A DNA stretch of 64,000 nucleotides from Lepidodermella squamata (lineage: Eukaryota > Animalia > Gastrotricha). The position numbers and the translations under genes are program-made. Below are positions 2,065 through 44,182 of the stretch, one piece after another (positions within the stretch are counted from its first letter, which is position 1; every line of letters begins with the position of its first letter). The DNA is taken from the NCBI GenBank assembly GCA_047495785.1, contig JBLDXI010000024.1:3038001-3102000 (forward strand). Direction: 5' to 3'. The notes below the pieces were generated by a model. The model had not been told where the DNA came from and searched no databases. It worked only from the letters and a program-made list of their open reading frames with translations.

Positions 2065-2654
2065 ATGACGATTAATTCGAGGAACATCCAACTTGTCTCG
2101 GCTTTTCTCGCTCTTCTGTTTGGTAAATATCGGCTGCCGCATAATGAGAGGGGTTAACAACTTCCGTTTCTTCTCTACTCCAGGGCAGCTTGCAGAGTCA
2201 TTCGGATTGTTTTATTGTAGCTATGGTTCAGGAAATATCTTAAGCTGCAAAAACGGAGGCACTTGTGTTAGCAACGATAAATGCAACTGCCTCAATGGGT
2301 ACACAGGAGATTATTGTGAGACGCCACCTTGTGAGTTATTCCCCCGTTGAACGATTCATATGCTTCGTCAATTCAAATGTTCAGCTTGCGGATTAACATG
2401 CTCGAACGGCGGAACTTGCACCATTGTTAACGCAGTTAGCACTTGCCAGTGCAGGTCAGGGTGGACGGGGACGACCTGTGATACGCGTAAGCATCTCAAA
2501 TTGTCAACAGCACAATATGTATTGTCATTTTATATTCGTTTCCTTCCTTTTACAAAAGCTAATTGCCAGAATGGATGTCTTAACGGCGCAACCTGTTCCG
2601 CCCCGAATACCTGTACATGTGCGTCTGGTTATACTGGATCAACGTGCAACAGTG
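2065..2654 (+). CDS. Orphan 5' module of the giant lectin gene family: signal peptide + 3 EGF-like exons (alternative first module or truncated paralog)
   Basis: Exons 2065-2122, 2184-2330, 2385-2486, 2559-2654 joined by GT-AG phase-1 introns give MTINSRNIQLVSAFLALLFG...CKNGGTCVSNDKCNCLNGYTGDYCE...; homologous exon for exon to 4281-4870; ends at a GTAAGT donor with no matching downstream body of its own. Confidence 0.8.
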
Positions 2655-4280: not shown

Positions 4281-7200
4281 ATGGCAGTTAATTCGACAAA
4301 AATTCAGCTTGTGTGTGCCTGTCTTGCTCTGCTGTTTGGTAAAAATTGTCCACCATAATATAACGAAAGCGTCTCACTTCTCTCATTTATTATAAGTTTC
4401 GGAGTCAAACAGCGGCCCTGGAGATTGTAGTAACGGTGTAGGAAATCCAGATATCTGTCAAAACGGAGGCACCTGTGGTAGTGATAAGAAATGCGATTGC
4501 GTAGCTGGGTTCTATGGAGCCCACTGCGAATTGGGCCACGCAATTGGTGAGCCATTCTCCCGATAATAACACATTCGCGTGTGTCGAAACCTCTATATCA
4601 TTCGTCTTACCTTGCAGCTTGTTCATTAACGTGCTCGAACGGCGGAACTTGCACCCTTGTTAACGCAATAAGCTCTTGCCAGTGTAGGTCAGGGTGGACG
4701 GGAACGACCTGCGATACATGTATTTTCAATTTTCACTATGGAAATTGCCTTTTGATAGTTGAATATACCTCCAGTTTCTTGCCCAAGTGGATGTCTTAAT
4801 GGCGGAACTTGTTCCGGTCCAAACACCTGCAAATGCGCGTCTGGTTATACCGGATCAACGTGCAACAATGGTATAGTATTATAAGAGCATCGCAATTCCA
4901 TTCATTGTTTATAGCCGAACTTCACTCCAACCTCCTTTTTTGATAGCAAGTTACCATATATATATTCGAACATGTCTCGTATTTGATTTCTCTGTTTTGG
5001 CCCCAAACACGCACATCTCCTCAGATTCTAAAATCTTCGAACCTGATACCCCATAAGCTAGACCTTGCCGTCTTTTTTGTGGACAAATCATATCTGATTC
5101 TGAATTCTGAATTACAACGCTTGAATTTTAAGCATCTCAAAAAATTCGAGTTTTCGCTTCACTGGGGATTAAATTGGTCTCTGGCAGCTCTCAGATGAAA
5201 TGTAAATGTTCATGATTCATCGATTGAATACATTTCCAGCGATTTGCTCGCCAAGCTGTCAAAACGGTGGGTCGTGCACCTCTCCTGACGTTTGTCTGTG
5301 CACCAGCGGATACAATGGAACAACTTGCCAATCTCGTAAGCTATAATCCTTCTAACTTCCGATATAATGTCCGAATTAACAAAAATACAGCCATTTGCTC
5401 GACTGCTTGCGGTAACGGTGGAACATGCATTTCGCCGAACACCTGCAGATGCGCATCAGGGTGGACAGGACCAACTTGCGCTACACGTTTGCAGAATACA
5501 TTATTGATATTATAAATTTCTTACGATTAATCTTTTAAAGCGGTCTGCTCTCCAACCTGCAAAAACAATGGCAACTGCACGGCCCCAAACGTTTGCCAAT
5601 GTGCAACTGGATACATCAGCATAGATTGCAGCACAGGTTCTAAGATCCTCTTTCATTTTAATTTCACACTAAATTTTACGCATTCCCAGCTGTTTGCAAT
5701 CCTCCGTGTAAAAACAACGGAACGTGCTCTTCGCCTGATGTCTGCACCTGCACGGCCAAGTGGACAGACTCGACATGTTCAACACGTAAGGCTGAGATGT
5801 GAACAGAAAATCTATCAGATGCCATTTATACTCAGCTATTTGCAATAATCCGTGTCAAAATGGCGGGACGTGTTCCAATCCTGACGTTTGCACCTGTGTT
5901 GCTGGCTGGACGGGATCTACTTGCGCAACGCGTACGCTTTCGCGAATTTCTCAACGTTTAGTTATCTTTCAATCGTTGTCTTTCAACCAGCTATTTGCAA
6001 CTCGCCCTGTAAGAACGGCGGAACGTGCGTTGGCCCTGATCAATGCAGGTGTCCTGCGATTTGGGGCGGTCCGACGTGCGTAGACCCTGCTTGCCCCGCG
6101 CGTAACAACTGCTCAGGGCACGGCAAATGCATAGCAGCGAACAATTGCACGTGTGACTTTTTGTGGAAAGGCGACAATTGCGATCAATGTTTGCTCGCAC
6201 TCCATAAGTATAATCGATTTAACTTGTTGCTTAAACAGGGTACTGCCAAGACGGCTGGTGTCAAAATAATGGCAACTGTTCAGGCCCGAAGTAAGTTTTT
6301 TGTCGGTAAACCTGTCCGTTGCTAGGCTAGAGGCGAGAAAACTTAGCAGTTAGCATCTCATCAGGTATGGACAGCTACTTAATAACTACGCAGTTTAAAA
6401 AAAAACCCCAGAAAATAAGGAAAAAAGAGTTAAATGATGGAAATTTAATTGTAGCCAATGTCAATGTGTGTGGAAGTATTGGCGCGGGCCGAGATGTGAG
6501 CAACGTGAGCGGTGAAGTAAACAAAATCTCTTCGTTATTTACATTCAATTTTTTGCAGCGGTTTGCTCTCCGGAATGCTCCAACGGTTTGAAGTCGCAAG
6601 TTGTATCACTTCAGACTTTTGCAATATTTCTTCCTCCACCCAGGTGGCCAATGCCTATGGTCAGGTGGTAATCAGTATGTTGTAAGAATTTAGTTCTCGC
6701 AATTGGTTAATACTTCTACGTTCAAGGTGCCATTGCCCAACAGGCTGGACAGGAAATGATTGCACAATACGTAGGCGATATATTGAATTTATTGAAACAT
6801 TTAAGTTACTCTGAATAAAAATAAAGCTGACGCCGCTTCCTGGGCTGGGCACCAAACATTCATCAGCCAGAATTCGAAGACTTGGACCCAAGATGACGTG
6901 TACAAGAAATTCACGCTTGATGCGAGTGCTTATCCCCCTGGTTATTCCTCAGCGCGTAATATTTGTAGTCTGCAGTGTTAACCTTTTCCTAAATATGTTA
7001 TTTCAAGCGACGAGTGTTGAGAACTGCTGCCCTTGTGGGACTTTCCTACTCGATAACAACTGCTACTTTGTGGTGAATGGTCATACTTCGTGGAATTTCG
7101 GTGAAACTATGACTCAGCCTCATTATACCTACGCAACTTGCAGCCACGCTGGAGGGGTACCTGCCACCTTCGAAACAGGCGATGCCCAGTCAAAAATGGC

Positions 7201-10200
7201 TAGTTTAGTAAAATGGCTTGCCACTGAGCAAAATATTCAGCTCGGGGACAAACCAGTTGATCTCGCGACTAGAGTGGTTAATTATGACGACGATTCATTT
7301 TATGACCTTTGCTTGCTTATCGGCGGTTTCCGAGATCACGCCACGAATAAGTGGTACTGGCAGACGTATCCGCCGGTCGAGATTGACAGCTCACTCTGGG
7401 TGAAAAACGAGCCACAGGGATACGAATTTCTTTGCATGATACCGCACAAAAAACGCCCAATGCTCAGAACTTATTACTACTGGTGGGGCGAACAGCCTCT
7501 CGTCTGCATGATACGAAACCCGTGTTCGACTATGCCCGTCTGCAAGCCTGGCGTTACGAAGGACAAGCTTGACACTGTTCGGATGTGGGATAGATGCTAC
7601 AGCACAGGCGTGTCTCCAAATAATGACTGGGGCACGGCTTTTGTGAATCGGCTCCAGGCAGAACAAATTTGCCAGAGTAAGAATGGATTCTTAGCATCTA
7701 TAAGGCAGCAATTCGAGCCTTTCTATTGGGCGTGGGGCTTGGACGTTACATTGACAAACGATCAAACTGCATTCAGCTTCCCATACCGAATCTGGAACTA
7801 TCAGGGATGGATTGGCTACAACCATCTGAACTGTTAATTTCTTGTAATTAGTGATGATTTTGAATTCACCTCATCTTTTTAACAGCTGATTACTACTGGG
7901 ACTCAAGCAATATTAACCTGGCGAGTCCTTACCACGCGAACTGGCGATTAGGTTCGGGCCAAGAGCCGAACGACCAAGATGCTAGTCTTTGCTCTGTTGC
8001 GAAATTCGACGGATGGATCGATGAGATTTGCTCCATGAATACAAACGTAAATTGAAAAATTAGTCATTTTGAAGATTACGTGAATATTCTTCTCGCAGAG
8101 AATCGCCTGTGAAAGCGGTGTTGGAGTACCAACAGTCGTCGCAGATACAGATAGTGGCAGCAATTGCGCTCTGACGTGCCCGATAGCACGTAGTTTCATT
8201 TTGGGCTCTAGTCTTTCTAATTATTTTATTTTTAACTTTCAGCCGGTTGCCCAGCTAATTACGCCTATGTAGCCTGCTTTGATTCTTGCTACAAATTCAA
8301 TACGTAATATCAATCAGCGTTACTTATTAAATCTGGCTAAAGATGAATCTCCCACCAGGGACAACTCAAAGACTTACTTCGAAGCACTTTCTGATTGCGT
8401 AAGTAAATGAAATTATGAAATCAATTGAATAAACACGTATTCTCAGGTTAATGATGGTGCCACATTTGCGAACATCAACTCAACGGAAGAGTTTACCTAC
8501 ATCACTAGCATGCTTGACAAGAAGAAAGACTGGTTCATCGGTCTCGGAGATTGGACAAGGCGGTCGAAAGGTAATCTGGGCACAGGCGTTACTACCTATG
8601 TTGGTGACTCTGATGGAACTTGGACATGGCAAGACGATACAATAGCCGATTCGATATCTTACGATACGATTGGCACCACCTTTTCAAAGAGCCCAGATCC
8701 ATATAAATTCCTGATATGGGAGAAACAACCTGCGCCCGCGTCTGATAAAGCGAGTGCCCCTTTCCTAACATTCTTGAGATGGCAAGCCTCGAGTAATCAA
8801 TGGTATATCCCAATCAGTGATAAGAACAAGTTCGACTACAAAGCAGCGTATGTTTGCGAGTACAACTCGGCGTGCTACAAGTGTCCAATGTCTTGGGTCA
8901 AATTCGGGACTTACTGCTTCCAATATTCAACCTTCGATGACGGCGATGGCACTTACTTTGATAAAAAGCTGAGTTGTCAGAACCAAGATCCAAATGCCTA
9001 TATTTGGGCTCCGAAAACGGAGATGCTGATTCTCTTCGTTCGTGTCTTGCTGCAGCAGATGAACAAGTTTGACTCTAGTAAGTCAGTATGGATAGGGCTT
9101 GAAAAAAGAGCAGATAACACATGGGGTTGGAGTGATGGTAGCGATGTAGCTCCGGGTGATGCCTATGACATATTCCGCGGAACAACTGTGACTGCAAATA
9201 ACTGGGCTTTCTACGTCGACATATCAAACAGAGCGAATAATTTGCAAAAAGTGACTGATCAGAATGGAACGCAATGGAAGCTTGCCAATCAAAATTCGAC
9301 ATCCTACCGCGTGATTTGCCAACTGCCTGGTACTTATGGCGTTGGTCGGCCATGTCAACCAAACTGTCCGACAAAAGGTGAATCATTGCGATTTCACGAT
9401 TATTAAGAGCATTCTGAACATTGTGCTTTAGTAACTTGCCCTGGTGGATACGAATATGCTCCATGCACGGACTCATGCTACAGAGTTTCAGGGTTCGTTA
9501 GATCTCCACAGAATTATAAATAATATGTGTTCTAGATGTAATTTGGCAGAAAGGTTTTGTAGTTACCTGATTGAATGCCACAACAATTTTCTCAGACATG
9601 TTACTTTTTGTGACTCGATACATCTGTTATGATTTTGCAGTTGGGGATCGAGGTATCTTGACGCTCTCAAAGACTGCGTGAGTTTTTTGCATATTGCAGG
9701 AACATATTATAGAATTCGGTCATTCCAGATGGGCTCCGGAGCATCTTTGGTCAACTTCAACTCACAAGACGAGTTCCGCCGGGTCATGTCAATCGACAAC
9801 ATTGACGAGAGCAAACAATACTTCATTGGTCTGCAAGACTGGGCAAGGCGTTCGCGGCGATATCCTGTCACGTACTCTTCTAATTATCAACCCTACATTG
9901 GTGATCCTGATGGTAAGTGGTACTGGTCAGATGACACCGGGCCAATCGATGCTTCGGATATACCCGACGGCTTCTTCGTCCCGTCGCCGGACCCCTGGAG
10001 CTTTCTAATTTGGCAGCAACGGCCTGCTGTTTTTTCTGATCGTAGCAACAACTTTGTAGCCACATTGACCTACTCAAAATCGCGTTCTCAATGGTATATC
10101 GCCGTGAATAATAGCAATTTCGCGTCAACCGCTCGCTACATCTGCGAGTACAGCATGGCGTGTACAATGTGCCCTAGCGGCTGGTCGAAATTCAACGACA

Positions 10201-13200
10201 AATGCTTCAAAGTCCTAAATAGTAATTACTACACAGGCTGGCAGGCAGTGCAGAATTGTCGCGATTTGGGATCGATAGTGATAGCGCCTCGAACCGAGAG
10301 CCTTATTATGTATCTCCGAAGTACAAACTATGTAGCGAAATGGGGATGGTCAGCTATGTACGTTGGGCTTCTCGCCAAAGGTACATCGTATACATGGGCT
10401 GATGGGAAGGATGCTGATGCGACCGATGCCTACGACATAAAAGCTGAACCAACTTCGGATGCGATTTATTTAGTAGGAGTTGGTCAAGACACGTCTTTGA
10501 CGAAACAAGACGAGCAAGATTACTTGCAATGGTCAAGCTTGAACAACAATTCCTATAGTGGATTAGTGGTTTGCCAAAGGAATGGAAGCTATGCAAACGG
10601 TGTCTTGGTGACTACCCAAGCTCCACCAGATTGCTTAGACGTATGTAAAACAATCATGGCCTAGATTTTCATTGCATAACGATTCCTTTTTATCAATAGG
10701 ATGGCTGTTGCAAATGCCCTTTTGTTAGGTTTTCAGACCAGTCGTCTCAAACCGATACATGCTACTACTTCTCCAACTACACGTAAACAATTATTTATTT
10801 TGACTGCCTTGTTTTTGTATTCATATTTTCCAGGGCAACGTGGGATGACGCCAGCTGGACTTGTACTGGAATGGGAGGTCATCTAGTGATTGCGGACACA
10901 ATGACGAAGCTTCAGTATATTTTGAATCACCCTAAAATGGTTGCGCCGTACTACTGGACCGCACTTTCCCTAAGTAAAATCTGAATATTGCCAAAGAATA
11001 AGCTGATTGTTATTACCAGATTCCTATGGCATTTGGGCTTGGCCGAACACTCCTAACAATTACACTGCTGCACTGAACAGTAGGGTTTAAGTGGAATGAA
11101 ATCAGCTATAAAAAATATTTAATCCAGGATATATCATTGGCGACAATGCGTGGCCATCAACGCCGAATTGTTACGCAGCTCTCATTTCGAATAATGAAGG
11201 AATGTTGGTCCCGTTCTGTAACAATTCAAAAAGTGTTCAGATCACAAACGCAACCGTTGGCAATACGACGACGTATGATCGGAGCACGCAGTTTCGATTC
11301 ATCTGCGAAATAGTTCACTCGCCTACTTCTTGCCTTGGTAAAATTCGACATTAATTTTTGTGTTTCCTCAGGCTTTTAGAATTATGAATCTGAATTTAGA
11401 CGTTCATAGACGCAATCACAATTTCTCGCGTCACTTTCCCAACTTCCTAAAATATGGGTTGGCCCTACGTCTCATCTTAAATTATGCCTGACATTGATTG
11501 CTGGAGCACGGCATATTTCTAGACATCTATTTCATGTTTTTTCGAATTTAGGCTGCAAATATCCCAGCGATGCGGTCGATTTGCAGAATTTGAACAATGG
11601 CCACAGGATTTCTGCTGATAAATGCATTTGGCTCTTCGATGACACTGGGGACCGCTCGACTAATATCAACACATGCAAAGCGGCTGGAATGCGGCCTCTA
11701 TCAATTTTGCAGAATTACGAATCGAGAATTATGACCAGAGCCATGTTCGAACTTGGAAAAGACTCGTTTTGGCTGGACCTGGTGCTGCGAAATAAGAGTT
11801 TGCTACCTTGAAATTAATTCTAAAGGTTTCCTATTTCCTTTTGATCGACAGCTGACTACGTCTGGGAAGGTGAACCGACCACCTGGCACACGACTCCCAA
11901 CAATCGTCTGGTGGGCTTGCCATGGAGAAACAACTGGTACCAGCCATGTACCCGAGTTGCAAACGACATGAACATTTACACGCGAAACTGCCAAGATTAC
12001 TCGATCCCAATTTGCACCGTTCCATCGGCGGCGTCATGCTCAGATATGTGCCCAGCTGGCTTTACTTCAGTTGGTGATACTTGCTATCGGCTAGTAACGT
12101 AAGATTTAGCATTTAGCATTTAGCAACAGCCGAACTTTCTTGACAAATTGTAAAGGTCACCAACAGCAAATAGCCCGTTTGCTGCTAGGACGTATTGCTA
12201 CAACAACTTTAATAGTTATAACCTTGCTTCGATAACGAGCACTAAAAAGTTCCAACAGCTTATCGATTACTTGACGTCAACTAACAGCTTACTTATCGGA
12301 TCCGCGATTTGGCTTGGCTTGGACAACAGCATAGTTACGTCCCACTCTGCATTCGATAATGCGAATTTAGTGCGATCAGGGGATCCTGATTCTGGTTTGG
12401 AATTGTATACATTCAAATAACTTGATAGCTAAAATGGTTTCTTCTTTAGTCTGGGAACTTGATAGTGGTGATAAGCTACCAATAACGTCGTTTGGTGCGA
12501 ATTCTGATGCGAGTTTCTGGGATGCAAGTTCGCCTAACAGCAGTCATCACTACGCCTATCTCTATTGGGATACTACAAACATCCGCGTTCGAACAATTTC
12601 GAAGAACACCCCTCTGAATGCATTATTCGTTTGTGAAAGGCCACAACCTTGCTTAGAATGCGAACTGGGCTGGGTATGTATTATTATCTTGATTTTCAAG
12701 TTTATAATTCAAAAAAATATCTAGTGGTTTTTCAATGGGCATTGCTATCGTAAAGTTTCTATCGTCGCCGGATCAAAGTTCAGAAGCGTCCGGAATAAAT
12801 GCGAATTCATGTCTTCGTACTTAACAACAATCAACTACCCGATGGAGAATATGTTTGTCAGACAATTTGCTGGCTTCGATAAATACATCTTCATGGGGAT
12901 ATACACTGTAATGACCTACAACTTACCGCTAAAAGAAGATTATTTCGAATGGGAGGACGGTTTGCGAATGAACGCGAGTCAGCTAAATCTATGGACCAAT
13001 AGTGAGCCAAATATTTGGAAAGGAATGGAATACTTATCCGCAATCGCCTCTAACACAAATGAGTGGAATGACGTTGACCCGGAGCACGGCAGCCCAAACA
13101 TAGCTGTTTGCGAAAAAGATGCGACCCCACCTACCATAAAATGTCCGAAATCAGGCTCTGCCGCATCAGCTTGTGGTGACAGCGTGGCAAACAGTATCTT

Positions 13201-16200
13201 CGTCAGTGCAAGTGGATTCACGGCAAGCTCTACCTTCACCAACGGTTCGGTTTCATACCCACCATCGAACATAGCCCTGGGAAATCCGTGGTGCCCTGAT
13301 CCTGTCGTAGCCTTTTCGCCATCAAGGCCTGCTTGGATAAAATTTCAGTTTACTGACGGCCCTGTTTACGTCAGAGCAATCGGAACCGAGGGTCCGACTA
13401 TTGGAACGGGCCGAGTGCTTGCTTATATCATTAGTTACAAACCAAGTTCGACCTACCCGAGGGAACTGCACGTACATGCCCACAAATCCACGGCTTACAT
13501 AACTAAAGCTTCACCGATCATATTCGCTGGAAATGGAGCAGAAACGGTGAAAAACGCCCAAGAAATATGCCCCCGGATACCAGCTACTGAGTTGACGATT
13601 TGGATACTCAGCTATGCTGTTATGCCATTTCTTAAGGTGGACCTGAAGGGATGCGCATCTCCAGGAAAAAGTAACCGTTCTATGTTTGAACCCTCAGCGA
13701 TTTATGAATGATTTTTGCTTTCTAGGTAGTCCAATGTGCGAGTGTTGGCATGAGCTCTTCGATGGCAAGAACACAACGACATATTCGTCTCTTTCTGTGA
13801 GCGCAGACTCAGGCAATGCCTCCGCAGCAAACGCCCTCACCCAGGCAGACCCTACCCAGATCATTGCGGGGTGGACACCAACAGTTTTCGGAGACGGCCT
13901 AAACTGGTGGAAAATTCAGTTCACCGTCCTCAAGGTTGTCACTGGTCTCATCATGCACGGCAGCAATGATCCGGCTAAAGCTAGTCAATGGATTACTTCT
14001 TACTACGTCCAGTGGTCTCATACCGGTTACGACTACACCTTCAACTACTATCAGAACTTGGATGGCACTCCAAGGTTATTCATCGGGCCAATGAACGCGA
14101 CGGCGCCCACTCAACAAACATTTTGCCCGCCTATGAAGCTGATAGCCTTCAAAATCATCCCTGTCTCATACAATGTAGCTCCAACAATGGTTGTTAATCT
14201 GTTTGGCTGCTCTGCTCGAAACAGGCGATGCTTCGATTGCTGTGACGTGATTGGCTTATGCACTTGCGCATGTCCAGTGGGGTAAGATTTCTCTAGAAAT
14301 AATATGGCTTTCTGATTAATGTTATGTTATCAGGTGGTCGGGTACGTCTTGCATGTCTCTCGCCTCTGGAAAGACTTCTTACATCGATGCCCAGTCTCCC
14401 GTTTGCCAGCGTGACTTTATCTATGACGCTCTTACTCGCTGGGGTGGTTCACTAACGACATCCAGCTCCAGCTCTGCCAGTGCATATTACGACGGGAACG
14501 AGGATTGCCCATTTTTCGCGATTCAGGCCACGTCCTACGATTCTCGCACATTCTTTCAAATTTCCTTCGGAAAGTCGACCTACGTCTCGGTATTAAGTCT
14601 AAAGGGCAAGACTGTTAGTAGTGAAGCGAGATACATCACCTTCTATGCTCTCTGGTTCTTGGTCGATAATACAAATGACGAGCTGTTCTATCCCATCCTC
14701 AATCTCCAAAGCAATCCTCAGTCAGGACTGAAGTCCATTCCTGGAGCCAGAGATACGACCACCTATACGTCGTATCAGTTTTGCCCCAATATTCGAACCA
14801 AAGCTCTTCGGATAGTCCCATTGAAGTTTGTTGGGTCGAGGCCGGAATCCTTCGTAAGAACCTTAGGGTGTCCTACTCATGCTCCGTGCTCCACGTGCTG
14901 TACAAGCGATAATGGATGCCAATGCCTGTGTCCCGTCGGTTATTCGACGTCTTTTGGAGTTGGGTACCAGCCAAACCCATGGCCTCATTGTGGTAAGAAC
15001 TTACTCGAGTAACCTCAAATGCTTTATAGCTATTATAGATCAATGGACCATGCTCCAAGTGGACTGTGAAGATCACGCTTTTCGCCAATCCAGCCTCGCC
15101 AGCTCGACCTACACAATCTATCCGCCGGCTACCAAATCGCCAATTCCTGTCTATTGCGATATGACAAGTTACGGTGGCGGATGGACCGTCATCCAACAAC
15201 GCTTGGACTACAGCCAGAGTTTCTATCAGAACTGGGCTGACTATAAAGCTGGTTTCGGATCTCTGACTAGCAGTTTCTGGCTTGGAAACGAGTACATCTA
15301 CATGTTGACCTCCGGCACGAATCGTTACGACCTGCTGATAGAACTGACAACAGTGGATGACTCAGTTGCTATAGCCTACTACAAAGATTTCAGCGTCGAT
15401 TCTGAGGCACTGTCGTACACATTACATGTCGGAAGTTTCGACTGTAGCACTGATATCGGTGACTCACTGACTCCGCTCCATGATGGTCAGAAATTCAGTA
15501 CTTTTGATAACGACACGTCAACGAGTGGTGCGGGATTTGCTTGTGCGAAGAATGCATATGGAGGATGGTGGTACAAAAGACCCGCGACCACCGTTAAGAC
15601 GTGCCAACAGGCCAATTTGAATGGAAACGGAATCGGAAAGGCTGAGGGATCGATGATTACGTGGGCTACATGGCGAGGCTATTGGGAAAGTATGAAAACT
15701 ACTAAAATGATGATTCGACGATCTTCAATGCCCTTCATGCTTCATCGTAAGTTCCATAGCCATTAAAAATAAATTCAAGTAAAAAGTTCCATCTAAATTC
15801 AAACCCTGATTCTCAAATTGAACAACAATATTCACATGCCATAGAGCTGCGACCCCAATACCCTTATCCTGTCGATTGTCTCGACATCCGGCAATACAAC
15901 CCCACTGCTCCAAGCACCAACTATACGCTATACACTGTAACCGGTGAAAGTGTGTCTGTCTATTGCGAGATGAACGCTCTGGATGGCGGTTGGACCGTGA
16001 TTCAACGGAGGTACTACGATACTAGCGTAACCTTCGACCAAAACTTCACCACCTACGTTCGGGGCTTCGGATCGCCTCTCGGTGCCCATTATCTCGGCAA
16101 CAAATGGATTTACGCGATCACAAACGTTGACCTCACCTTCATTCCCTATCAACTGGCTGTAGTTGTCGAAGATTATAATGGCGAGAAGCGGAGTTCAATC

Positions 16201-19200
16201 TACGACGCATTTTGGCTAAACAATAACAGCTCCTACGAGTTGCTTGTTTACGGCTATAATTCCGATGGGACTACTGTAGAGGTTGCTGGAGACGGTCTGA
16301 GTACGCAGAGATGGCAACCGTTTCGAACCAAGGATCAATCGAAATCCTCTTGTTCGGCATCTTACAGTACCGGATGGTGGCGCCACGGCGGGTGGTATGA
16401 TAGCTACAAGTGTAGCGAAGCAGACTTGAACGGCATGTACGATGTCAACACCTGGGAAGGAGGTGTATTCTGGTCAAGATGGAAGGGCCGATATGAAAGC
16501 TTGAAATCAGCAACGATGATGATCCGCCGGGCTGGTCCGAAGCCAATCGATTGCTTGGATATGGCTGGGCAAGGCATGACTAAGGAGGGCCTTTACTACA
16601 TATACCCGTACAATATGAAGCCATTACGGGTCTATTGCGACATGAAAACTTTTTACAACTCACCGAGTTACTCAGCCGGCATTGGCTGGATCGTTATCCA
16701 ACGGAGGTCGAGGTTTGATATACCTTTCAATAGGACGTGGTCTGAGTTCAAGAAAGGCTTCTCGTCGGCAAATAATGGTCTTAGCGGGGATTTATGGCTC
16801 GGTCTGGATAATATCTACGCCCTTACTGCTTCGACGGCGTATGCACTGCTTATCACGCTGAAAAACCCAGTTGATAATGGTACTTACTACGCGTACTACG
16901 ACGATTTTTCAATCTCAGGCGAGAGTGACGGATACCAATTATATGTTGATAACTTCGATCAATCAACCAAGCCCTCTCAAGCTGCCGGGAATGGGCTGGA
17001 AACGTCTGCTAACCAGCCCTTTTCTACCTACGATAATGGAGATCGTAAGGACTGTGTTTCAAGTGGTAAGCTCAGTCCATGGTGGTTGCCCAGTGACTGT
17101 TCAATGTCCAAAAGTAACCTCAATGGCTATTACAAGGACTCTCGAGACCTAGCTGGGGTTGTTTGGAGCACTTTAGCCGATCTATCCACCTCAATGTATT
17201 ATACCCAAATCGCGATTCGCAGGAAAAGCCGAATCAAGGACTGTTCGTACGTCGCCACCTCATCTGGCGTTTATACCCTCACCCTGCCCGACGGTGGAAC
17301 ATTCCGATCATACTGCGACATGGACACAAGTTATTCATCTACGACGTATCCTAATAGAGGAAATGGTTGGACGGTGGTTCAGAAAAGATCTTTGAACAAC
17401 GCGAATTTTTGGCGCGAATGGGATGACTACAAAAATGGGTTTACAGGAAATCTCAGCTACAGTGGGGACTACTGGCTGGGCCTTGAAACTTTCAGTCGCT
17501 TGACCATGGCTGGGTCTTATTCCCTTTTGGTGTCCTGTAAAAACGTGGATGATAAGTTCTATTACGCTTATTACAACGATGTCAAGGTTTATGACGAAAG
17601 TCAGGGGTATCGTATCTTAGTGAGCGATTTTGACGAAACTACGAGCAATAAAGCCGGGGATTCTTTCAATTTTATCCACAACAATCAGAGCTTCAGCGCT
17701 ACTGATAAAGGAAGCTTCACAAAGCCGTGTTTTAAAAGTGGTAATAGACCTTATTTTGGGCCATGGTGGTACATTCCGTGGGATAGTGACTATTGGCCAG
17801 ATGGCATTGATCCGCAGTGTTGGATGGCAGCTAACCTTAACTCGGCGAATTGGGGCAGTACAGATTGGGGTTTCGGTTTAAACTGGGCGACCCTAACGTC
17901 TTACAATATTTCATGTAAAGCCACTCAAATGGCTATCAAACAAAAAGCAAGCGAGCAGTTGAACCGGCCCAGGGCGGCTACAGCGAACATGTGTGGGCGA
18001 AACACGATGTTGAAACATACTTGCAAACATGCGAATCAACCGGTAGCTGGGGATTCTACGCGGGTAATGCTCACTGAAAAAAGTGGAGTTTACGCTGCCA
18101 CTGATCTTGTCTGTAAAGGTAATTTCACTTAGGTCACCTTTCACGGGGCGATATTCAAACATTTTAACAGCTTACGCCGAACCTCAAGATTGCTCGTGGA
18201 AGCAAACAAAAGCCGCGACTAGCAGTAAGTTTACCTCCCAAACGTACGGCGACCTCACCGGCGATAACGGTGATGGAGTCGCTGCGAAATTCACTGCTTT
18301 CTGCGACATGGAAACGTTCGGAGGCGGCTGGACAGTTGTCCAGCGTAGAATCGACGATACGACAACTTTTATGCTGGATCAGTCAAGTTTCGAAACTCCA
18401 TTCGGGGTTCCGAACAAGAACTTTTGGTTGGGCAATAAGGTGATCAAAGGCTTGACATCAGCAGCTGAATATGAGCTGCTGGTCGAAATACGAGTCGCGG
18501 ACAACTACGCCTTCGCCCTATACAAACTGTTCTATCTATCAAGCGACGCATTTGTTTTGAACGTGCAAAACTATCAGAAATGCTCCACCGCAGGGGATTC
18601 ACTGACTTCTCTCAATGGATATTCCTTTACCTTCGATATTTGCGGAGGTTGGTGGTTTCCCCAACCCTCGCCCTGTGTATCTACCACCCAGTCGGCACCA
18701 ACCTCTAATTTGAATGCTCAGTTTGGAACTCAGAGCCCGATAAGTGCTGGGATACACTGGTTCACCTATAACAACAATTTCGTCCCCAATTTAAGTTGGA
18801 CATCAATGAAAATTCGCCGTTATCCAATGACTCATGGCAGGTATGTCGAAGTGCCCGATTTCAAGTGCAATAAGGGCAAAAGTGCGACTGTTCCTAACAT
18901 CAAAACTGCAGAGGATTGCCAAAATGCTTGTACCAATTATACGGATTTCACATGCATTACAGCCGTTTTTACGAAAGACGAATGTACTGTGAGGTCTGAA
19001 ACCTGTCCGCCAGGCTCAGGCGCAACAAAGTCGGACACCAGCACATTCTTCCGAATAGATGACTGCGATATGTTTCCGGGTGTTTGCGGGCCCCCTCCGA
19101 CTATGACGGGGACCACGCAAGAGGTAATATCGGCTGTTTTCGGGTCGAAACTTGCGATCAACTACACTTGTCTGCTGGGTTTCACCAACTCTCTGTGGAA

Positions 19201-20145
19201 CAACGATACAACTACCCTTACCTGCGATACCTCGACAAAGAGATGGAAGGGAGATTGGATGGATTGTAGGACATTATGCGGCGCTTTCCCCGACCTATCG
19301 GCATTCAACGCCGTTCGAAAGCCAGATATCGACATTGACGGAGGCACAATGACTCTATACTATGAGTGCGACAATGACTTCACACTAGTTTCAACCGGAG
19401 CCCCTATTCGAAAATGCGCTCCACCCTATGGCGATTGGACTGGGGAAGACATCGTTTGCAAATCAACTCGATGTCCCTTACCTCCTGTAGTTCCAAATTC
19501 CTGGAATAACTACACAGTTCCCACACCTGTTCCTTATGCAGACCAGAATCGGTGGAAGACGACTTGGCTATACAACTGCAATCGAGGCTATGTGTTCCCA
19601 GATTTCACGAAGACAAAAACGATTTATTGCGGTGATAGCCAACAATGGGAGCCAAAATCACCCGGCGTCTGCATTTCATTCAACTGCGCTGATCCACCGC
19701 ATTTTGACAACGTCAAAGTATCGGGTCTAGTGCCAATGGAAGCTAACGTGCTGTATGAATTCGGGACAACATTTACGTATGAATGCTATGAAGTCGATAC
19801 CCTGGATCCGATGAATTGGGACGGGCGGGTCAATGTTTCCTGCATTGGTAAGATGTTAGGCGTGCCAATAAATTGTGTGTGTGAACAATTTTGTTAGCTA
19901 ACAATACTTGGGGAGTTTTGAACTACACTGGATGGTCACAACCTTGGCTTCCGTCAAAATGCATTCGTAAGTTGAACTTTTCAAGAGTCGCGGTAAGTTT
20001 GAAACTTGTTATGAGAGTCGAGAAGTTGCACCACTGGTTTGTAGTTGCGGTAGCTTCGGAATTTGTTCCTGCTGCTTTCTTTTTGTTTTGGGGAGCTGAA
20101 AAGCAACTGACCTCCTCGCGGTGCTCCCTGGAATTACCCGTGTAG
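4281..20145 (+). CDS. Giant mosaic extracellular lectin/receptor, copy 1: SP-(EGF)x~12-(CTL)x~10-(F5/8C)x3-(FReD)x5-PAN-(CCP)x4, roughly 4,300 aa; last exon uncertain
   Basis: Signal peptide MAVNSTKIQLVCACLALLF; about 40 GT-AG introns traced with the frame kept. EGF motif CxNGGTCxxPxxCxCxxGWTGxxC; CTL motifs (CY, WIGL, W-DG, ICE); discoidin motifs (AWIKFQF, WITSYYVQWS, IIPVSY); fibrinogen-C motifs (VYCDM..GGWTVIQRR, FWLGN, FSTFDND, GGWW); sushi C-P..Y-C..GF..C..W..C. Confidence 0.9.
4397..6770 (+). other. EGF-like repeat array of copy 1 (mostly one EGF per phase 1-1 exon)
   Basis: Exons begin at 4397, ~4618, ~4776, 5240, 5391, 5541, 5690, 5837, 5991, 6239, ~6455, 6559 and onward, each with EGF cysteine spacing; the last repeats are split into micro-exons. 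Confidence 0.85.
7008..13115 (+). other. Array of about 10 C-type lectin-like domains of copy 1
   Basis: Repeated CP..W..F...CY/F, LASI, WIGL/FIGL, W.W.DG and (Y/F)ICE motifs in ORFs 6893-7837, 8510-9406, 9678-10664, 11494-12724 and 12809 onward. Confidence 0.8.
13180..14875 (+). other. Three F5/8 type C (discoidin) domains of copy 1
   Basis: FTASS...WCP...AWIKFQF..VRAIGTEG...LKVDLKGC and two similar units, each ending in LxGC. Confidence 0.75.
15040..18825 (+). other. Five tandem fibrinogen C-terminal (FReD) domains of copy 1
   Basis: Five occurrences of (V/S/A)(Y/F)C(D/E)M...GW(T/I)V(I/V)Q(R/K/Q)R followed by (W/Y)LG(N/L) and a terminal M-I-(R/K)-type motif. Confidence 0.9.
18840..19966 (+). 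other. PAN/apple-like domain plus four CCP/sushi domains of copy 1
   Basis: TAEDCQNACTNYTDFTCITAVF..C (PAN); CGPPP, CGAFP, CPLPP and CADPP starts with Y-C and W...C (sushi). Confidence 0.8.
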
Positions 20146-20195
20146 GGGTGATACTAACAAGTTGCTGTCAAGTTTCGCCCAACTGAAAGTCCAGG

Positions 20196-28387: not shown

Positions 28388-28480
28388 GGATCATGTCTCG
28401 GGCCCCAACATCAGTATAGACTGACTACTCACGAGAAAAGGGGTGTAACGCCATGGGCGCCATGGGAATTAAACCGTGAA

Positions 28481-30858: not shown

Positions 30859-33800
30859 ATGAAGGTTAATTTAAAGACCGTTCAACTTGTTTGTGCCTGT
30901 CTCGCTCTGCTGCTTGGTAAAAATGGCATATCACTCAACGAATGACGTAAAATTCCCCTCTTGGTTGCAACTTTCAGAGTCAATCAGCGGCCACCCTCCC
31001 ACTCCCGGAACCAGCCCTAGCCCTGGAGATTGTAGAAATGGTGCAGGACATCCAGATAGCTGCAATCATGGAGGCACTTGCGGTAGCGATAAGAGGTGCG
31101 ATTGCGCAGCTGGATTCACAGGGACATACTGCGATGATGTAATTGGTGAGCCAGTTTTCTGAAAGAAACGCGCACACGTGTGTCAAAATCATGATTCCAT
31201 TTACCTTGAAGCTTGTTCACTAACGTGCTTGAACGGCGGAACTTGCACCATTGTTAACGCAGTTAGCGCTTGCCAATGCAACTCAGGTTGGACGGGGACA
31301 ACTTGCGATACAAGTGAGTATATTCAATTTTCACAATGGATATATGCATTATATTATTTGTCAATATAACTCAAGTTTCTTAAAACTAAAATTGAAAGGT
31401 TTTACGCACAGTGTAACTTTCCATTGGTGCTCATGATCACCTCGCGAAATTTAGAGTGCGCGTAAAAAGTTTTATTTAACTTTTCTCGCGCGAGAACACC
31501 GTATTTATTTGATAGAGGGCATCAGGATTTATTAACGGTTTACAGCCATTTCACACCAAATTACACATACATTTTCTGAATTTCTACAGATGACATCAAA
31601 TTTCCATCAAAGAAGGAAATCCCTAACTCCTTCATTTTCAACTAGTTTTCTGAATGTCTCTCCTTTTCCCAAACTAATATTTCTATGCTAAAACATGGGT
31701 TTTTTAGGTTATAAATCTCATACAGTAAAACCTGTCATCTCGAAGGCTCACGGTGCCATTCGACCCATTCGACTTCTAGAGAGATTCGAGATAGAGGGAG
31801 ACAGTAGTGTGCGAAGTGGGTACGAGGTAGGATCCGGGAATTGAGGTGTTTTCTCGGTTACTTCGGCAACCAGCCAAAGGGTCCCCCTTGGTTGTTTCAG
31901 CCTTCTTCTGGTTGGAGTCCCGGAGCTGGGGTGTTGCAGCACCCCTGCACCCCTGTACTTCGCACCATGGGAGACAGACATAACTCACAGGAAGTCAGCC
32001 CTGTGTCTATTTTAAAGCTTTTATTTCATCAACCCAATATTTTAGAGCACGAAAAGCAACATTTTATTGAATATTATCGCTATATAAGTCGCGAGCCACG
32101 TTTTTGGCCTTAAATGTGCTAAGACAGGCCGCGTGATCTGAAATAAAGTGTTTAAGCAGGATTACGCAATGAAGGGTTGTCGATTACGAGCGGCTTCAGC
32201 TTCTCACCGAGCTCTCTTACATGCTCTTTAGCCACTTTGCGCCTCGCAATGCGCGCGCGTCATCGCTCAACACTAAAAATGAGCTTCGAAGACTCGACTT
32301 CGAAGATTCAAATAATGCACCATATGGCTACGGTTCCTTTCCCGTCCTTCGACTTTCGAGATGGAAAGAGTGAATTATATGCGCTACATGCTGAAAATCC
32401 CACGGTTCCTCGGCAATACGGCGGTCGAGATACACGGGGTTCGAGATAACAGATAACAGGTTTTACTGTATTCGTCAATCGTGTTTGAATCAATTTTGAT
32501 TTATTCCATTGTCCCTTAGAATATTCGTATTCGTATTCGTAGACAGAGCATAACTATTTCCTTTACCTTTGAGTTATCTTTGAAACACCTGGAATTAGAG
32601 ATCTCTCAAATCTTAAAACTCAGGTTTTCGCCTTACAACTGTCAGATAAAATTTTACACTTTCTTGATTCTCTATTGAATGCATTTGCAGTTATTTGCTC
32701 GCCAAGCTGTCAAAACGGAGGGTCGTGTACATCTCAAGGCGTTTGTCAGTGCGCCAGCGGATACAATGGTACAACCTGCCAATCTCGTAAGCTAAAAGCC
32801 TTGTGACTTCTTAAAAAGCTCGAACTCGAGTGAAATTTTAGCCATTTGCTCGACTGCCTGCGGTAACGGTGGAACATGCATTTCGCCGAACACCTGTAGA
32901 TGCGCATCCGGGTGGACAGGACCAACTTGCGCTACTCGTTTGCTGAACAATTGATTGACTTTCGAAGTTTCTTATAATTTTGACTCTTTTATAGCGGTGT
33001 GCTCTCCAACCTGCAAGAACAATGGCAACTGCACGGCCCCAAACGTTTGCCAATGTGCAACTGGTTACATTGGCATAGATTGCAGCACAGGTTCAAAGAT
33101 CCAGTGTCATTGGTTTTCCATTTTCATGCTATGCATTCCACAGCTGTTTGCGACCCTACATGTAAAAACAACGGAAATTGCTCTTCACCCAATGTCTGCA
33201 CTTGCACAGCCAAGTGGTCAGATTCAACGTGTTCAACACGTAAGGCTTATCAGATTTGAAAAGGAATCTATCAGATTACCCTTCCACTCAGCAATTTGCA
33301 CTAATCCTTGTCAAAATGGCGGGACGTGTTCAAATCCTGATGTTTGCACTTGTGTGGCTGGCTGGACTGGACCCACATGCGCTAAACGTAAGACATTTGT
33401 TGACGGCTCGTTATTTCTCGAACCAAGAATTTGGTTGTCACAGCAATTTGCAGCTCGCCATGCGTGAACGGCGGAACGTGCTTTGCGCCTGATCAATGCA
33501 AGTGCCCGTCGATATGGGGCGGTCCAACATGCGCCGATCCGGCTTGCCCTGCGCGAAACAACTGTTCGGGGCACGGCACCTGTGTGGCGGTCAATAATTG
33601 CACGTGTGACTTTTTGTGGAAGGGCAACAATTGCGATCAATGTGAGCTGTCTAATGTATTAAATGCATTTATTTATTCTCAGCTTTGCTTCGCAAGGGTA
33701 CTGTCAAGACGGTTGGTGTCAAAACAATGGCAATTGCTCGGGCCCGAAGTGAGTCTTTATTTGACACACTTGGGTGCTAATTCTTTGCGCAAAAGGAAAG

Positions 33801-36800
33801 GCCATACCAATTGTTTAAACAAAAATTGTCCAAAGGTGCGAACGTTTCAGGTGTGAGCACGCTTGCAACGTGCCTTGAGTTGAAGATTTAAGAACCGGCC
33901 TCATTTAGACATTTCGAAAGTGGACAATAATTCAGCACACGTCACTAATAACAAATGGTCAACAAGTCGGGAAAATATCAATAGTTTTTGAGAAGGGCCA
34001 TAATATGGCCCAGCCAGCTCTTCACCAGAAACAGCTGGATAAGTACTTTCAAGCCTCAAGCCGTCAGTTTTAATCCAGAATAATATTTATTGCAAAAAAA
34101 TCATGTTTCCCGAAAAAAACCCATTTAATTTGCTTGGGGCATCGCAAATAGAAAAAGACACCTGTAATAAGAATCGATTTGAATAAGAAAATTGATTGGA
34201 TACCGATTTGAAGGCAAAGCCTACTGGCATCAATGACTAATTTCGCGCCCTACCTTCCGAGACATTTAAAGGCGCCTGATTCGAAAAGGGTAGCGGGATT
34301 CATACTCTCGGAGCTTCGGCAGCGAGGAATTGATGAAATGAAGCTAAAATCAATCAATTTTGCCATTTCCATTTTTTTCTGCTAGCTGCTAGTATTACTC
34401 ACGACCGCGCTGCCCTTGCATCAGCCATATAGCATCAGCCAGGGTATAGCATGTAGATAGCTAGTCGAGTCCTATATAGCGAGGTTCCATTTCCGACAGT
34501 CGCTGCGGAAACAATCGAACTGAACGAGCGATATCCACTCCGAACTTTCAGGCCGGCGGTTGACAAATTTCCCCTAAATTAAATTGTTACCGCTTCTTGG
34601 GTAATCGCCTCGAATGCTGCGGACATCTGGTCTTGGTTACAGCTTACAGAATGCATACCTCGGTATAGGTTCCAGTTTACGCTCAAGGCCTATACAAGTA
34701 TAGAAGAGCGCGTCAATATGTTCCGACAGGAATTTGTTACCCTTTATTATTATTTAAGCTTTCAGTTCGGCGGGAAATCATCATATTTTATCGTTTCACT
34801 CATTGTGGGTTGAAGTCACAAGTCATTTTGGGATATACTGCAAAAAAAGCTATACTTGCCCATGTCGAGAAAATTAGGCAACAAAGTACTCGATATCAAC
34901 CTTAATAGGCAGATCTTAATCTAATGAAAAATTCGCATGCTGTAAAAGAATCTTCTGCGTCGCACTAAGTCTATGTTGCAATTTCAGCCAATGTGAGTGC
35001 GTTTGGAAGAATTGGCGTGGGCAGCGATGTGATCAGCGTGAGTTTTCTTCAGGGCGAGCTTTACTCGATTTCAAGTCATTTATGTTTCAGCTGTTTGCAC
35101 ACCAGAGTGCTCGAATGGTAAGACTGTAGCAACTAACCACTAGGCATTCGATTGCCGTATTGCCTTTTAAAGGAGGGCGATGTCTCAGAGCAGGAGGCAA
35201 CCAGTAGGTCTATGAAATTGTGCGAGAATAGAAGTATAAAGCCAAATCTCACAGGTGCCATTGCCCGACTGGATGGACGGGGAACGATTGCACAATTCGT
35301 ATGAAGAACATTTACGTTGTGTTCAGCATTTCATCGCATTTCTTTCCATGAAGCTGACGCTGCTTCATGGGCAGGCCATCAAACTTTCACGAGCCAGAAT
35401 GCCAAGACTTGGACCCAGGATGACGTATACAAGAAGTTCACGCTTGACCCAAGTGCTTATCCACCTGGTTACTCGTCGGCCCGTGAGCATTGTGATAAGA
35501 GATCCCGAATACATTGTAAAATGCTATTTTTTCCAAAAGCTACAAGTGTTGAGAACTGCTGTCCTTGTGGGACTTTCCTACTCGATAATAACTGCTACTT
35601 TGTGGTGAATGGCCATACGTCGTGGAATTTCGGTGAAACTATGACTCAGCCTCATTATACCTACGCAACTTGCAGCCACGCTGGAGGGGTACCTGCCACC
35701 TTCGAAACCGGCGATGCCCAGTCGAAAATGGCTAGTTTGGTAAAATGGCTCGCCACTGAGCAAAATGTACAACTCGGGGACAAACCAGTTGATCTCGCAA
35801 CTAAGGTGGTTGATTACTACGACGATTCATTTTATGACCTCTGCTTGCTTATTGGCGGTTTCCGAGATCACGCCACGAATAAGTGGTACTGGCAGACGTA
35901 TCCGCCGGTCGAGATTGACAGCTCGCTCTGGGTGAAAAACGAGCCACAGGGATACGAATTTCTTTGCATGATACCACACAAAAAACGACCAATGCTCCGA
36001 AGTTATTACTACTGGTGGGGCGAACAGCCGCTAGTCTGCATGATTCGTAATCCTTGCTCATCGTTGGCAGTTTGTAAGCCTGGCGTCACTAAGGATAAGC
36101 TGGAAAATGTTCGAATGTGGGACAGATGCTACACGACGGGTGTCTCGCCTGGGGAGGATTGGGGCAATAGCTACGTCAACCGTCTGAAAGCTGAGCAGAT
36201 ATGTCAAAGTCGTGACGGTTTTCTCGCGACTATACGACAGCAGTTTGAACCCTTCTACTGGGCTTGGGCTTTGGACGTAGTGTTGTATGACGATCAAACC
36301 ACATTCGGATTCCCGTACCGCTTATGGAACTTCCAAGCTTGGATAGGGTACAACCACTTAAATTGTGAGTTTTCGTATAATGGTTCTGAACTAATTTTCA
36401 GTACTTATTTCTTAGCTGATTACTACTGGGATTCAGCGAACAAGAACTTGGCTAGCCCATATCATGCAAACTGGAGGCTTGGATCCGGCAAAGAGCCGAA
36501 CGATCAAGATGCAAGTTTTTGTTCCGCAGCTCAATTCGATGGGTGGATCGATGAAATCTGCAGTTTGAATACCCATGTAAGCAGTCACTTAGTGCCCCAC
36601 GCAATAAAAAATTGTTGCCTCTCAGAGAATCGCTTGTGAGAGTGACTTGGCAAAACCAGTAGTGACCGCGACTGATTCATCTGCTAGTCAATGCGCAGCG
36701 GCGTGTCCTGTTACTCGTTAGTATACAGAACTCCTCAGCTTTTGAACTGATACCATTTATTTTACCCGTGAAGCATCTTGCCCGGACAACTATGTCTACA

Positions 36801-42800: not shown

Positions 42801-43809
42801 TCGAAACTCGCAATAAACTACACTTGCCTGTTGGGTTTCACCAACTCTCTGTGGAACAACGATACAACTACCCTTACCTGCGATACCTCGACGAAGAGAT
42901 GGAAGGGAGATTGGATGGATTGTAGGACATTATGCGGCGCTTTCCCCGACCTATCGGCATTCAACGCTGTTCGAAAGCCAGATATCGACATTGACGGGGG
43001 CACAATGACACTATACTATGAGTGCGATAATGACTTTACACTAGTTTCAACCGGAGCTCCTATTCGAAAATGCGCAAAACCATATGGCAATTGGACTGGG
43101 GAAGAAATCGTTTGCAAATCAACTCGATGTTCTTTACCTCCTGTAGTCCCAAATTCCTGGAATAACTATACAGTTCCCACTCCTGTCCCGTATGCAGACC
43201 AGAATCGGTGGAAGACGACTTGGCTGTACAATTGCAATCGAGGCTACGTTTTCCCAGATTTCACGAAGGCAAAAACGATTTATTGCGGCGATAATCAAGA
43301 ATGGGAGCCGAAAACGCCCGGCTATTGCATTTCATTCAACTGCGCCGATCCACCGCATTTTGCCAATGTTAAAGTTTCGGGTCTAGTGCCGATGGAAGCT
43401 AATGCGCTGTATGAATTCGGGACAACATTCACGTATGAATGTTATGAAGTCGATACCCTTGATCCGATGAACTGGGATGGGCGGGTCGATGTTTCTTGCA
43501 TTGGTATTATCTTAGACGTGTCAATGAATAGCTAATGTAAATAATTTGTTTTAAGCAAACAATACTTGGGGAGTTTTGAACTACACCGGATGGTCACAAC
43601 CTTGGCTTCCGTCAAAATGCATTCGTAAGTTGAACTTTTGAAGAGTCGCGGTAAGTTTGAAACTTGTTATGAGGGTCGAGAAGTTGCACCACTGGTTCGT
43701 AGTTGCGGTTGCCTTTTTATATGTTTCTGCTGCTTTCTTTTTGTTTTGGGGAGCTGAAAAGCAACTGACCTCCACGCGGTGCTCCCTGGAATCACCTGTT
43801 TTGGGGTGA
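30859..43809 (+). CDS. Giant mosaic lectin, copy 2: SP-(EGF)x~11-(CTL)x4+partial-(FReD)partial+3-PAN-(CCP)x4, with in-frame internal deletion; last exon uncertain
   Basis: Signal peptide MKVNLKTVQLVCACLALLL; exon-for-exon homology with copy 1 and GT-AG introns traced in frame; ORFs 35317-36639, 37032-37994, 39866-41872 and 41958-43535 align to copy 1. Confidence 0.85.
31723..32468. mobile_element. Intronic pogo/Tigger-like MITE
   Basis: TA|CAGTAAAACCTGTCATCT ... AGATAACAGGTTTTACTG|TA. Confidence 0.8.
31805..31969. mobile_element. 165-bp hAT-like MITE nested in the pogo-like MITE
   Basis: 8-bp TSD GGAGACAG at 31797-31804 and 31970-31977; termini TAGTGTGCGAAGT / ACTTCGCACCATG. Confidence 0.75.
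37914..38083. mobile_element. 170-bp Tc1/pogo-like MITE just inside an intron of copy 2
   Basis: TA|CAGTCAGTTCTCGCCATAGTACACT ... AGTGTACTATGGCGAGGAGTGACTG|TA. Confidence 0.8.
38514..39397. mobile_element. MITE with CATAGAG termini and 8-bp TSD (P-element-like; middle shell)
   Basis: TSD GGGCCAGC at 38506-38513 and 39398-39405; long inverted arms including 39061-39154 vs 39234-39327. Confidence 0.8.
38535..39005. mobile_element. PIF/Harbinger-like MITE (inner shell)
   Basis: ~160-bp TIRs beginning GGGTGTGTTTTT; 3-bp TSD CAG at 38532-38534 and 39006-39008. Confidence 0.8.
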
Positions 43810-44182
43810 TACTAACAAGTTGCTATCCATAAATTTACCTTCTTATCAAAATGTGCATCAATTTCAGAACATTTCTCAAATAAAATAATTTCTTATGGCT
43901 TTTGATGGAAAATGTAATAAAACTTTGTTAAATTTGCTGAATATAACCCATTTTTAAGACCTTTTTGAAGCGTCGTGTGTAAAGACACTAAACCTCCAGC
44001 TATGACCCTCGCCATCTGCTGAGCTACGACTGAAGCTCAAACTCCAGCTAAAATTCGAATTATTGACCAAGATGATCTTCGACACCTATTATTCGAGCTG
44101 ACAGTATACGGAGGACGTAACGCATGTTGAACGCCAGAGCTGTAAAACGATACGTGAGGAGTGGGGATCGGAGTCGTGTCGT

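Follow-up and report, generated by a model that had tools for sequence, protein, structure and literature searches.

A giant lectin-mosaic gene of the gastrotrich Lepidodermella squamata and a predicted HDV-like ribozyme behind its last module

A 64,000-nucleotide (nt) stretch of the genome of the gastrotrich Lepidodermella squamata (assembly GCA_047495785.1, contig JBLDXI010000024.1, positions 3,038,001 to 3,102,000 of the forward strand; hereafter the window) contains a gene, called gene A here, whose predicted product carries a signal peptide followed by 35 modules: 12 EGF repeats, 10 C-type lectin-like domains (CTLDs; CTL1 to CTL10), 3 F5/8 type C (F5/8C, or discoidin) domains, 5 fibrinogen-related domains (FReDs), a PAN domain, and 4 CCP (Sushi) modules. 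The 3' ends of gene A, of its tandem paralog in the window (paralog B), and of a metagenomic ortholog share a conserved block with the predicted fold of a hepatitis delta virus (HDV)-like self-cleaving ribozyme in the sense orientation. Judging from the sequence, we favor a secreted structural or adhesive protein (coat, mucus, glue, or egg coat), at a probability of roughly 0.45, and the ribozyme most likely cleaves the transcript 5' of the poly(A) site and thereby ends or limits the message. An earlier note on this DNA had recognized the mosaic gene but missed its paralog and ortholog as well as the ribozyme.

A splice-path search with manual refinement gave a model of gene A with 40 exons, open without a stop from the ATG at 4281 to position 19966 (4,291 codons). 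All 39 introns are of the GT−AG type with a median length of 54 nt, and 34 of them measure 46 to 71 nt, so that this animal has very short introns; the longer ones are 98, 148, 164, 214, and 369 nt. The splice model derives from the sequence, the joined protein served for frame checks and local comparisons, and the database searches were run exon by exon. RNA support for the splicing was sought in the sole sequencing run found to contain the locus. Its contigs pass through introns without joints, and it was therefore judged to be a DNA run, which says nothing on splicing; it also has contigs with differing letters and flanks, which represent further gene copies.

Gene A is very probably one gene because paralog B keeps its exon lengths and the metagenomic ortholog is colinear with it. 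The single mosaic gene of ~4,300 aa proposed in the earlier note is thus borne out by an open 40-exon frame of 4,291 aa and by the module order of paralog and ortholog. The note had let the gene run from 4281 to 20145; its start holds, while its end is one of several possible ends, and the ribozyme lies after 19966. It is highly improbable that this region comprises two or more adjacent genes: the five longer introns could conceal gene borders, but the frame is uninterrupted, there is no second signal peptide, and both the paralog and the ortholog hold the identical order across the places of these introns.

Pfam searches on single exons and separate checks agree with the domain counts given earlier for all six module types. 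The modelled protein has a mass of ~477 kDa, 216 cysteines, and 43 N-glycosylation sequons; its 4,291 residues contain neither an RGD motif nor a membrane helix, and Pfam detected no protease, collagen, or signaling domain in the exons scanned. Leaders paralogous to its signal peptide occur at 30859 and ~2065. The calcium-binding EGF consensus is not present in the EGF repeats. Among the CTLDs, CTL10 alone scores above the Pfam Lectin_C cut-off and CTL6 and CTL7 score weakly, CTL1 and CTL3 are supported by ESM features (0.95 and 0.94), and a leave-one-out profile finds all 10 (E values of 1e-3 to 1e-30 from a single sequence; CTL2, CTL7, and CTL8 are weak). CTL3-4 and CTL5-6 form a duplicated pair (41% and 31% identity). 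A search with the CTL3-4 exon gave no homologs, and an AlphaFold model of CTL3-4 was discarded (pLDDT of 39). F5/8C domains 2 and 3 were detected by Pfam, and domain 1 was recognized from an AlphaFold model, which Foldseek matched to the C domains of factor V/VIII (E value of 4e-5); the ortholog gives three Pfam F5/8C matches. The closest solved relatives of FReD1 are MFAP4 (1e-44), ficolin-2, and tachylectin-5A.

The ortholog was found on metagenome contigs of the European Nucleotide Archive (L002 to L004 and L007), which encode CTL9, CTL10, three F5/8C domains, four FReDs, PAN, and four CCP modules. It is 36 to 48% identical to gene A, nearly intronless, and colinear with it through CCP4; the end of CTL10, the three F5/8C domains, and FReD1 lie within one stop-free frame of 792 residues. 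On a Logan contig from a third source, the third F5/8C domain is followed by FReD1, 2, and 3, and introns lie at the same two borders between modules. A scan of JGI metagenomes with a PAN-CCP alignment gave no match. In a FReD tree with a rough bootstrap and with a long, unplaced branch for the third FReD of the ortholog, FReD1, 2, and 5 cluster by position across species (support of 97 to 100), and FReD3 and FReD4 of gene A are sisters. Because of this sister relationship, the five FReDs of gene A appear most simply to have arisen from four.

Canonical sugar-binding motifs are mostly lost. EPN is retained in 2 of the 10 CTLDs, namely CTL2 (7541 to 8116; EPN with WID) and CTL10 (12659 to 13120; EPN with WND), and the remaining 8 lack EPN or QPD together with a WND-type motif. 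The Cys-His acetyl-sugar site of ficolin-2 and MFAP4 is absent from all 5 FReDs, each with a substituted His, although FReD1 retains part of the acidic calcium loop. Gene A is under strong purifying selection, with dN/dS values between gene A and paralog B of 0.06 to 0.14 in all measurable blocks (EGF, CTL1-2, FReD, and PAN-CCP).

A structural cross-linker thus fits better than a pattern-recognition protein because the sugar sites are mostly lost, no effector module is present, and purifying selection is strong. Of the functions proposed in the earlier note (multivalent glycan sensing, mucus or adhesive, or microbe capture), mucus or adhesive fits better; pattern recognition, with EPN in 2 of 10 CTLDs and Cys-His in none of 5 FReDs, is weakly supported. 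The product may still be a secreted multivalent agglutinin for pattern recognition or food capture, whose lectin-type arrays trap bacteria via microbial glycans. Glycan-binding members are established in all three folds, CTL10 with its EPN and WND aligns with the CTLDs of Mincle and aggrecan, FReD1 has its partial calcium loop, and several gene copies exist per genome. We nonetheless consider this function doubtful, as the canonical sites are gone from 8 of 10 CTLDs and all 5 FReDs, the ortholog's CTL10 has EPG in place of EPN, and selection is purifying, not diversifying, on a protein without an effector module.

As a secreted structural or adhesive glycoprotein of ~477 kDa, the gene A product would work as a long cross-linker with many binding sites, be it in an outer coat, an egg coat, mucus, or a glue. 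Judging from their families, the EGF and CCP arrays would be spacers, and the motifs suggest that the CTLD, discoidin, FReD, and PAN arrays mostly bind to proteins or surfaces by means other than canonical calcium-sugar chemistry. The two EPN-type CTLDs, perhaps together with FReD1 and the discoidin domains, may contribute real glycan binding. The array would have expanded by tandem module duplication, of which CTL3-4/CTL5-6 and FReD3/FReD4 are observed cases.

The ribozyme emerged as a conserved non-coding block from an alignment of the 3' ends of gene A, paralog B, and the ortholog. Its predicted fold has every helix of the nested double pseudoknot (P1, P1.1, P2, P3, and P4). A structural descriptor matches the ends of gene A and paralog B, nothing else in the window, and the end of the ortholog, with no match in 40 random 64-kb sequences. 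All five aligned rows have a G-U pair at the cut and a C in J4/2. In these five rows, which include two pairs of near-identical rows and in which P4 was paired by hand, 99% of the cells are paired and 6 pairs in P1, P2, and P4 have changes on both sides. The best Rfam matches, drz-agam-1 (E value of 0.008, 24.7 of 37 bits) and HDV (20.9 of 50), are both under the gathering score. Minimum free energy folding, which is unable to show a pseudoknot, gave a z of ~0. The ribozyme is 93% alike between gene A and paralog B, while the DNA directly after it is 45% alike. We also considered whether the conserved 3' block holds a codon for readthrough or selenocysteine and dropped this reading because the ribozyme accounts for the conservation. 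A DNA-pattern scan for the ribozyme core also retrieved two contigs (L005, positions 1821 to 1876 of the minus strand, and L006) from an unrelated AT-rich plant-metagenome organism without the lectin gene, where AT-rich non-coding DNA carries a minimal ribozyme of the HDV-like type that shares this core.

Could the ribozyme be no more than a leftover from the 5' end of a retroelement, or have no activity in vivo, in a gene that ends by ordinary polyadenylation? Most HDV-like ribozymes accompany retrotransposons (PMC2950038), the top Rfam match is drz-agam-1, and the same core is present in the plant-metagenome DNA. Against this, the place of the ribozyme is conserved across species whose synonymous sites are saturated, and between gene A and paralog B the likeness falls from 93% within it to 45% in the sequence right after it. 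No same-strand non-LTR retroelement follows directly; unconserved DNA and convergent genes lie there instead. We regard this reading as unlikely.

In gene A, paralog B, and the ortholog, a GTAAG donor-like site of phase 1 abuts the last Cys of CCP4, and the predicted cut follows after 123 nt in gene A and paralog B and after 148 nt in the ortholog. AATAAA occurs only 3' of the ribozyme (in paralog B and on contigs L002 and L003), with none near gene A. In the unspliced reading, the stop lies 109 nt before the cut in paralog B, 53 nt after it in gene A, and 16 nt after it in the ortholog. A 49-nt intron with a weak acceptor would put a stop 48 nt before the cut in both gene A and paralog B, but none of the splice choices has this result in the ortholog. 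The three copies have neither a downstream exon nor a stop position in common after CCP4. The idea of a conserved basic C-terminal tail found no support: in the spacer, gene A and the ortholog are no more alike than expected by chance (758 of 5,000 shuffles).

These gene ends also bear on whether the product serves polycystin-1-like receptors as a soluble counterpart (ligand, decoy, or partner). In that case, a ribozyme in a former intron would cleave the transcript ahead of any exons for a membrane domain and so truncate a receptor-type gene into a secreted form, with the unpaired phase-1 donor left as a relic. The donor behind CCP4 in all three copies, the lack of a common downstream exon or stop position, and the four-FReD array of the ortholog would suit such an origin, and in ascidian Themis proteins an FReD ligand is reportedly paired with a polycystin-1-like receptor. 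However, the ribozyme is followed by convergent, unrelated genes in paralog B and the ortholog, and we find a receptor counterpart fairly unlikely.

The fold and position of the ribozyme are observed; from them we infer cleavage and its effect. A conserved HDV-like ribozyme behind the last module would cut the transcript 5' of the poly(A) signal and so end or down-tune the message, and a cut ahead of the stop codon would feed it into non-stop decay. Several points weigh against a structural protein from a message ended in this way. The stop behind the cut in unspliced gene A and in the ortholog is not explained by a simple 3'-untranslated-region model, and, depending on how the C terminus is read, a hydrophobic stretch upstream of the cut could serve as a membrane or GPI tail. 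VWD, TIL, and mucin-type repeats, which are typical of known glues and mucins, were not seen in gene A. Cys-His is present in just 8 of 22 single-FReD matches, so that its loss is compatible with non-canonical sugar binding. The small ribozyme alignment, the Rfam scores under the gathering score, and a sole sequencing run that behaves as DNA have to be added to these. It is tempting to assume that a lineage-specific family of giant secreted lectin mosaics domesticated an HDV-like ribozyme as a 3'-end device in place of the usual poly(A) route, with some copies cut before the stop, and that this step may yield a secreted protein from the ectodomain of a polycystin-like receptor; we put this forward tentatively and at well below even odds.

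The exons of paralog B have the lengths and phases of their gene A counterparts, while the introns of the two are just 58 to 75% alike. The equivalent of 9790 to 16273 of gene A (6.5 kb) is replaced in it by 18 unrelated nucleotides (39900 to 39917), and the junction joins one half of CTL5 to one half of FReD2 with the frame kept. This loss may be a true deletion and repair junction or an amplification chimera. An L. squamata assembly was made from amplified DNA (PMC11660948), and if the assembly used here is that one, the junction could be a chimera. The third, 5'-only copy (dN/dS of 0.26 over 65 codons) is possibly an alternative N terminus of gene A or a truncated duplicate; its phase-1 donor fits the gene A exons at 4775 or 5240. 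The last exon and the next 60 nt (19898 to 20026 and 43556 to 43684) are 97 to 98% identical between gene A and paralog B, the synonymous level of the neighboring exon being ~75%, which may reflect local gene conversion or a constraint at the RNA level. This stretch includes a second GGTAAGT site, 23 nt past the donor.

Gene A is flanked by a 242-nt inverted pair of 99.6% identity (3299 to 3540, plus strand; 20340 to 20580, minus strand), whose right arm runs into decayed frames (20505 to 20967, minus strand) that resemble a non-LTR element end and have no Pfam match. The view that the pair marks a transposon with gene A inside found no support, as one arm is part of a longer element in decay and no target duplication is common to the flanks; the pair probably represents two insertions of one young repeat. 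MITE-like inverted-repeat elements lie at 342 to 1180, 28466 to 28911, 38543 to 38998, and 39061 to 39327, some of them in long introns of paralog B.

Table 1. Coordinates of gene A, its copies, and the predicted ribozymes (window positions unless a contig is named)
Feature	Positions	Strand	Remarks
Third, 5'-only copy	2065..2654	+	Signal peptide and 3 EGF exons; phase-1 donor at the end
Start codon and signal peptide	4281..4410	+	Exon 1 and beginning of exon 2; residues 1-21 hold the most hydrophobic 19-residue windows
12 EGF repeats	4423..6766	+	Mostly one per 96-nt phase-1 exon; Pfam on single exons, Cys pattern
10 divergent C-type lectin-like domains	7028..13120	+	Pfam, ESM features, leave-one-out profile
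3 F5/8 type C (discoidin) domains	13169..14874	+	Cys-rich linkers after the second and third
5 fibrinogen-related domains	15053..18823	+	FReD3 and FReD4 are sister copies
PAN/apple-like domain	18833..19063	+	Pfam PAN_1 E 0.011, below cut-off; Cys pattern retained in the ortholog
4 CCP/Sushi modules	19085..19962	+	Pfam Sushi 6e-9; complement receptor 1 match 1e-22
3' spacer	19967..20089	+	GTAAG donor-like site, phase 1, then 123 nt to the predicted cut
HDV-like self-cleaving ribozyme (predicted), gene A	20090..20165	+	P1, P1.1, P2, P3, P4; predicted cut between 20089 and 20090
Tandem paralog B	30859..43624	+	26 exons, 2,407 open codons, without EGF3
HDV-like ribozyme (predicted), paralog B	43748..43823	+	109 nt past in-frame TGA (unspliced reading)
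HDV-like ribozyme (predicted), ortholog	L002 2607-2679	sense	

Further genes lie downstream of paralog B. Convergent with it is a single-exon gene of 739 aa resembling GABA-B-type class C G protein-coupled receptors (44522 to 46741, minus strand). Two tandem single-exon genes (47338 to 50207, plus strand) encode secreted beta-propeller-like proteins of ~450 aa with a bacterial-like look and hydrophobic C termini that may be GPI anchors. A small secreted gene at 52002 to 53456 (minus strand) has PAN-like and C-type lectin-like Cys patterns, and a gene at 57480 to 61295 (plus strand) has TIR-like, NB-ARC-like, and ankyrin parts.

The earlier note did not recognize the architecture, and we found the complete domain order in no annotated protein or paper searched, on the basis of exon-by-exon searches without a full-length or CDART-type architecture search. 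Tandem FReDs, which the note had contrasted with the usual single C-terminal FReD, are not unique to gene A: in a search of 1.84 billion representatives with a three-FReD exon, 9 of the 150 best matches have three or four FReDs (~33 to 44% identity). Among these nine are proteins of amphioxus, Elysia, and Plectus in which Sushi, olfactomedin, or CTL modules accompany the FReDs, and, the ortholog aside, none matches the CTL, PAN, or CCP parts of gene A. F5/8C and FReD are joined in just one amphioxus-type protein among these matches; the discoidin-FReD neighbor pair also occurs in assembly GCA_001625305.1. Like gene A, amphioxus CAH1246567.1 (three Sushi, olfactomedin, and four FReDs) and KAI8514006.1 (Sushi and several FReDs) place tandem FReDs beside Sushi modules, and Plectus sambesii A0A914VWG1 (CTL and three FReDs) places them beside a CTL; identities to such multi-FReD proteins are just 33 to 36%. 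In our tree, with its rough bootstrap, the amphioxus and Plectus arrays fall outside the clades of the gene A FReDs and are not orthologous by position. Anopheles FREPs with two to three FBG domains have been published (PMC1242226), and none of the amphioxus, Plectus, and Anopheles proteins has the 12 EGF repeats, 10 CTLDs, and 3 F5/8C domains with PAN. The parts are thus known and tandem FReDs not unique, while the whole order is undescribed in the proteins and papers searched, and gene A is a member of no family tested.

Ficolins, tachylectin-5, MFAP4, FIBCD1, and snail FREPs have the FReD fold in common with gene A. These proteins have one terminal FReD, oligomerize, and mostly possess Cys-His, whereas gene A has five internal FReDs without it, followed by PAN and four CCP modules. 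Pfam gave no match to a collagen or IgSF segment before the FReDs in the exons scanned, to which no coiled-coil predictor was applied. The mannose receptor family (MRC1, LY75/DEC-205) has 8 to 10 tandem CTLDs, few of which bind sugar; gene A has 10 in tandem, and the ESM features of CTL1 lie near LY75 and MRC1 clusters. The ricin-type and FnII head and the membrane span of that family are not found in the 4,291 modelled residues of gene A, which is headed by 12 EGF repeats and has four other module types.

Sea-star Sfp1 and flatworm Mlig-ap1/2 are secreted mosaic glue proteins of lectin, EGF, CCP, or discoidin modules. Drosophila Uninflatable (PMC3340373) is, like the gene A product, a giant extracellular mosaic of CLECT, FA58C, CCP, and EGF domains, but it has one CLECT, three CUB, and three HYR domains and a membrane span in another order and lacks FReD and PAN, while CUB, HYR, and a span are missing from the modelled part of gene A. 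Oikosins (PMC3390340), Sfp1, and Mlig-ap1/2 are large, secreted, lineage-specific mosaics with structural roles, and they are functional analogs of gene A rather than demonstrated homologs. The oikosin paper mentions neither fibrinogen nor FA58C domains, and an appendicularian source with an oikosin as the gene A protein found no support. The gene A protein adds to the products of extracellular domain shuffling. It is undescribed, however, besides being conserved and strongly constrained, and it is a candidate coat or glue protein in a micro-animal that has been little studied.

The predicted gene A ribozyme has the nested double pseudoknot, the G-U at the cut, and the position of the catalytic C in common with CPEB3 and drz-Agam-1. 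They differ in location: the CPEB3 ribozyme lies in an internal intron and the drz-Agam and R2 types head retroelements, whereas the ribozyme of the gene A family lies 123 to 148 nt behind the last module. In the 3' untranslated region of Clec2 lectin mRNA, a hammerhead ribozyme is conserved in its host gene and lowers reporter output by 80% (PMC2950038); the present ribozyme is of the HDV type, and the copies differ in whether it precedes or follows the stop. The ribozyme matters more than the protein, since conserved self-cleaving RNAs with a role in a host gene are rare in animals (CPEB3 and Clec2). With an element of 76 nt whose position behind the genes of one family is fixed, the host role of such ribozymes becomes directly testable.

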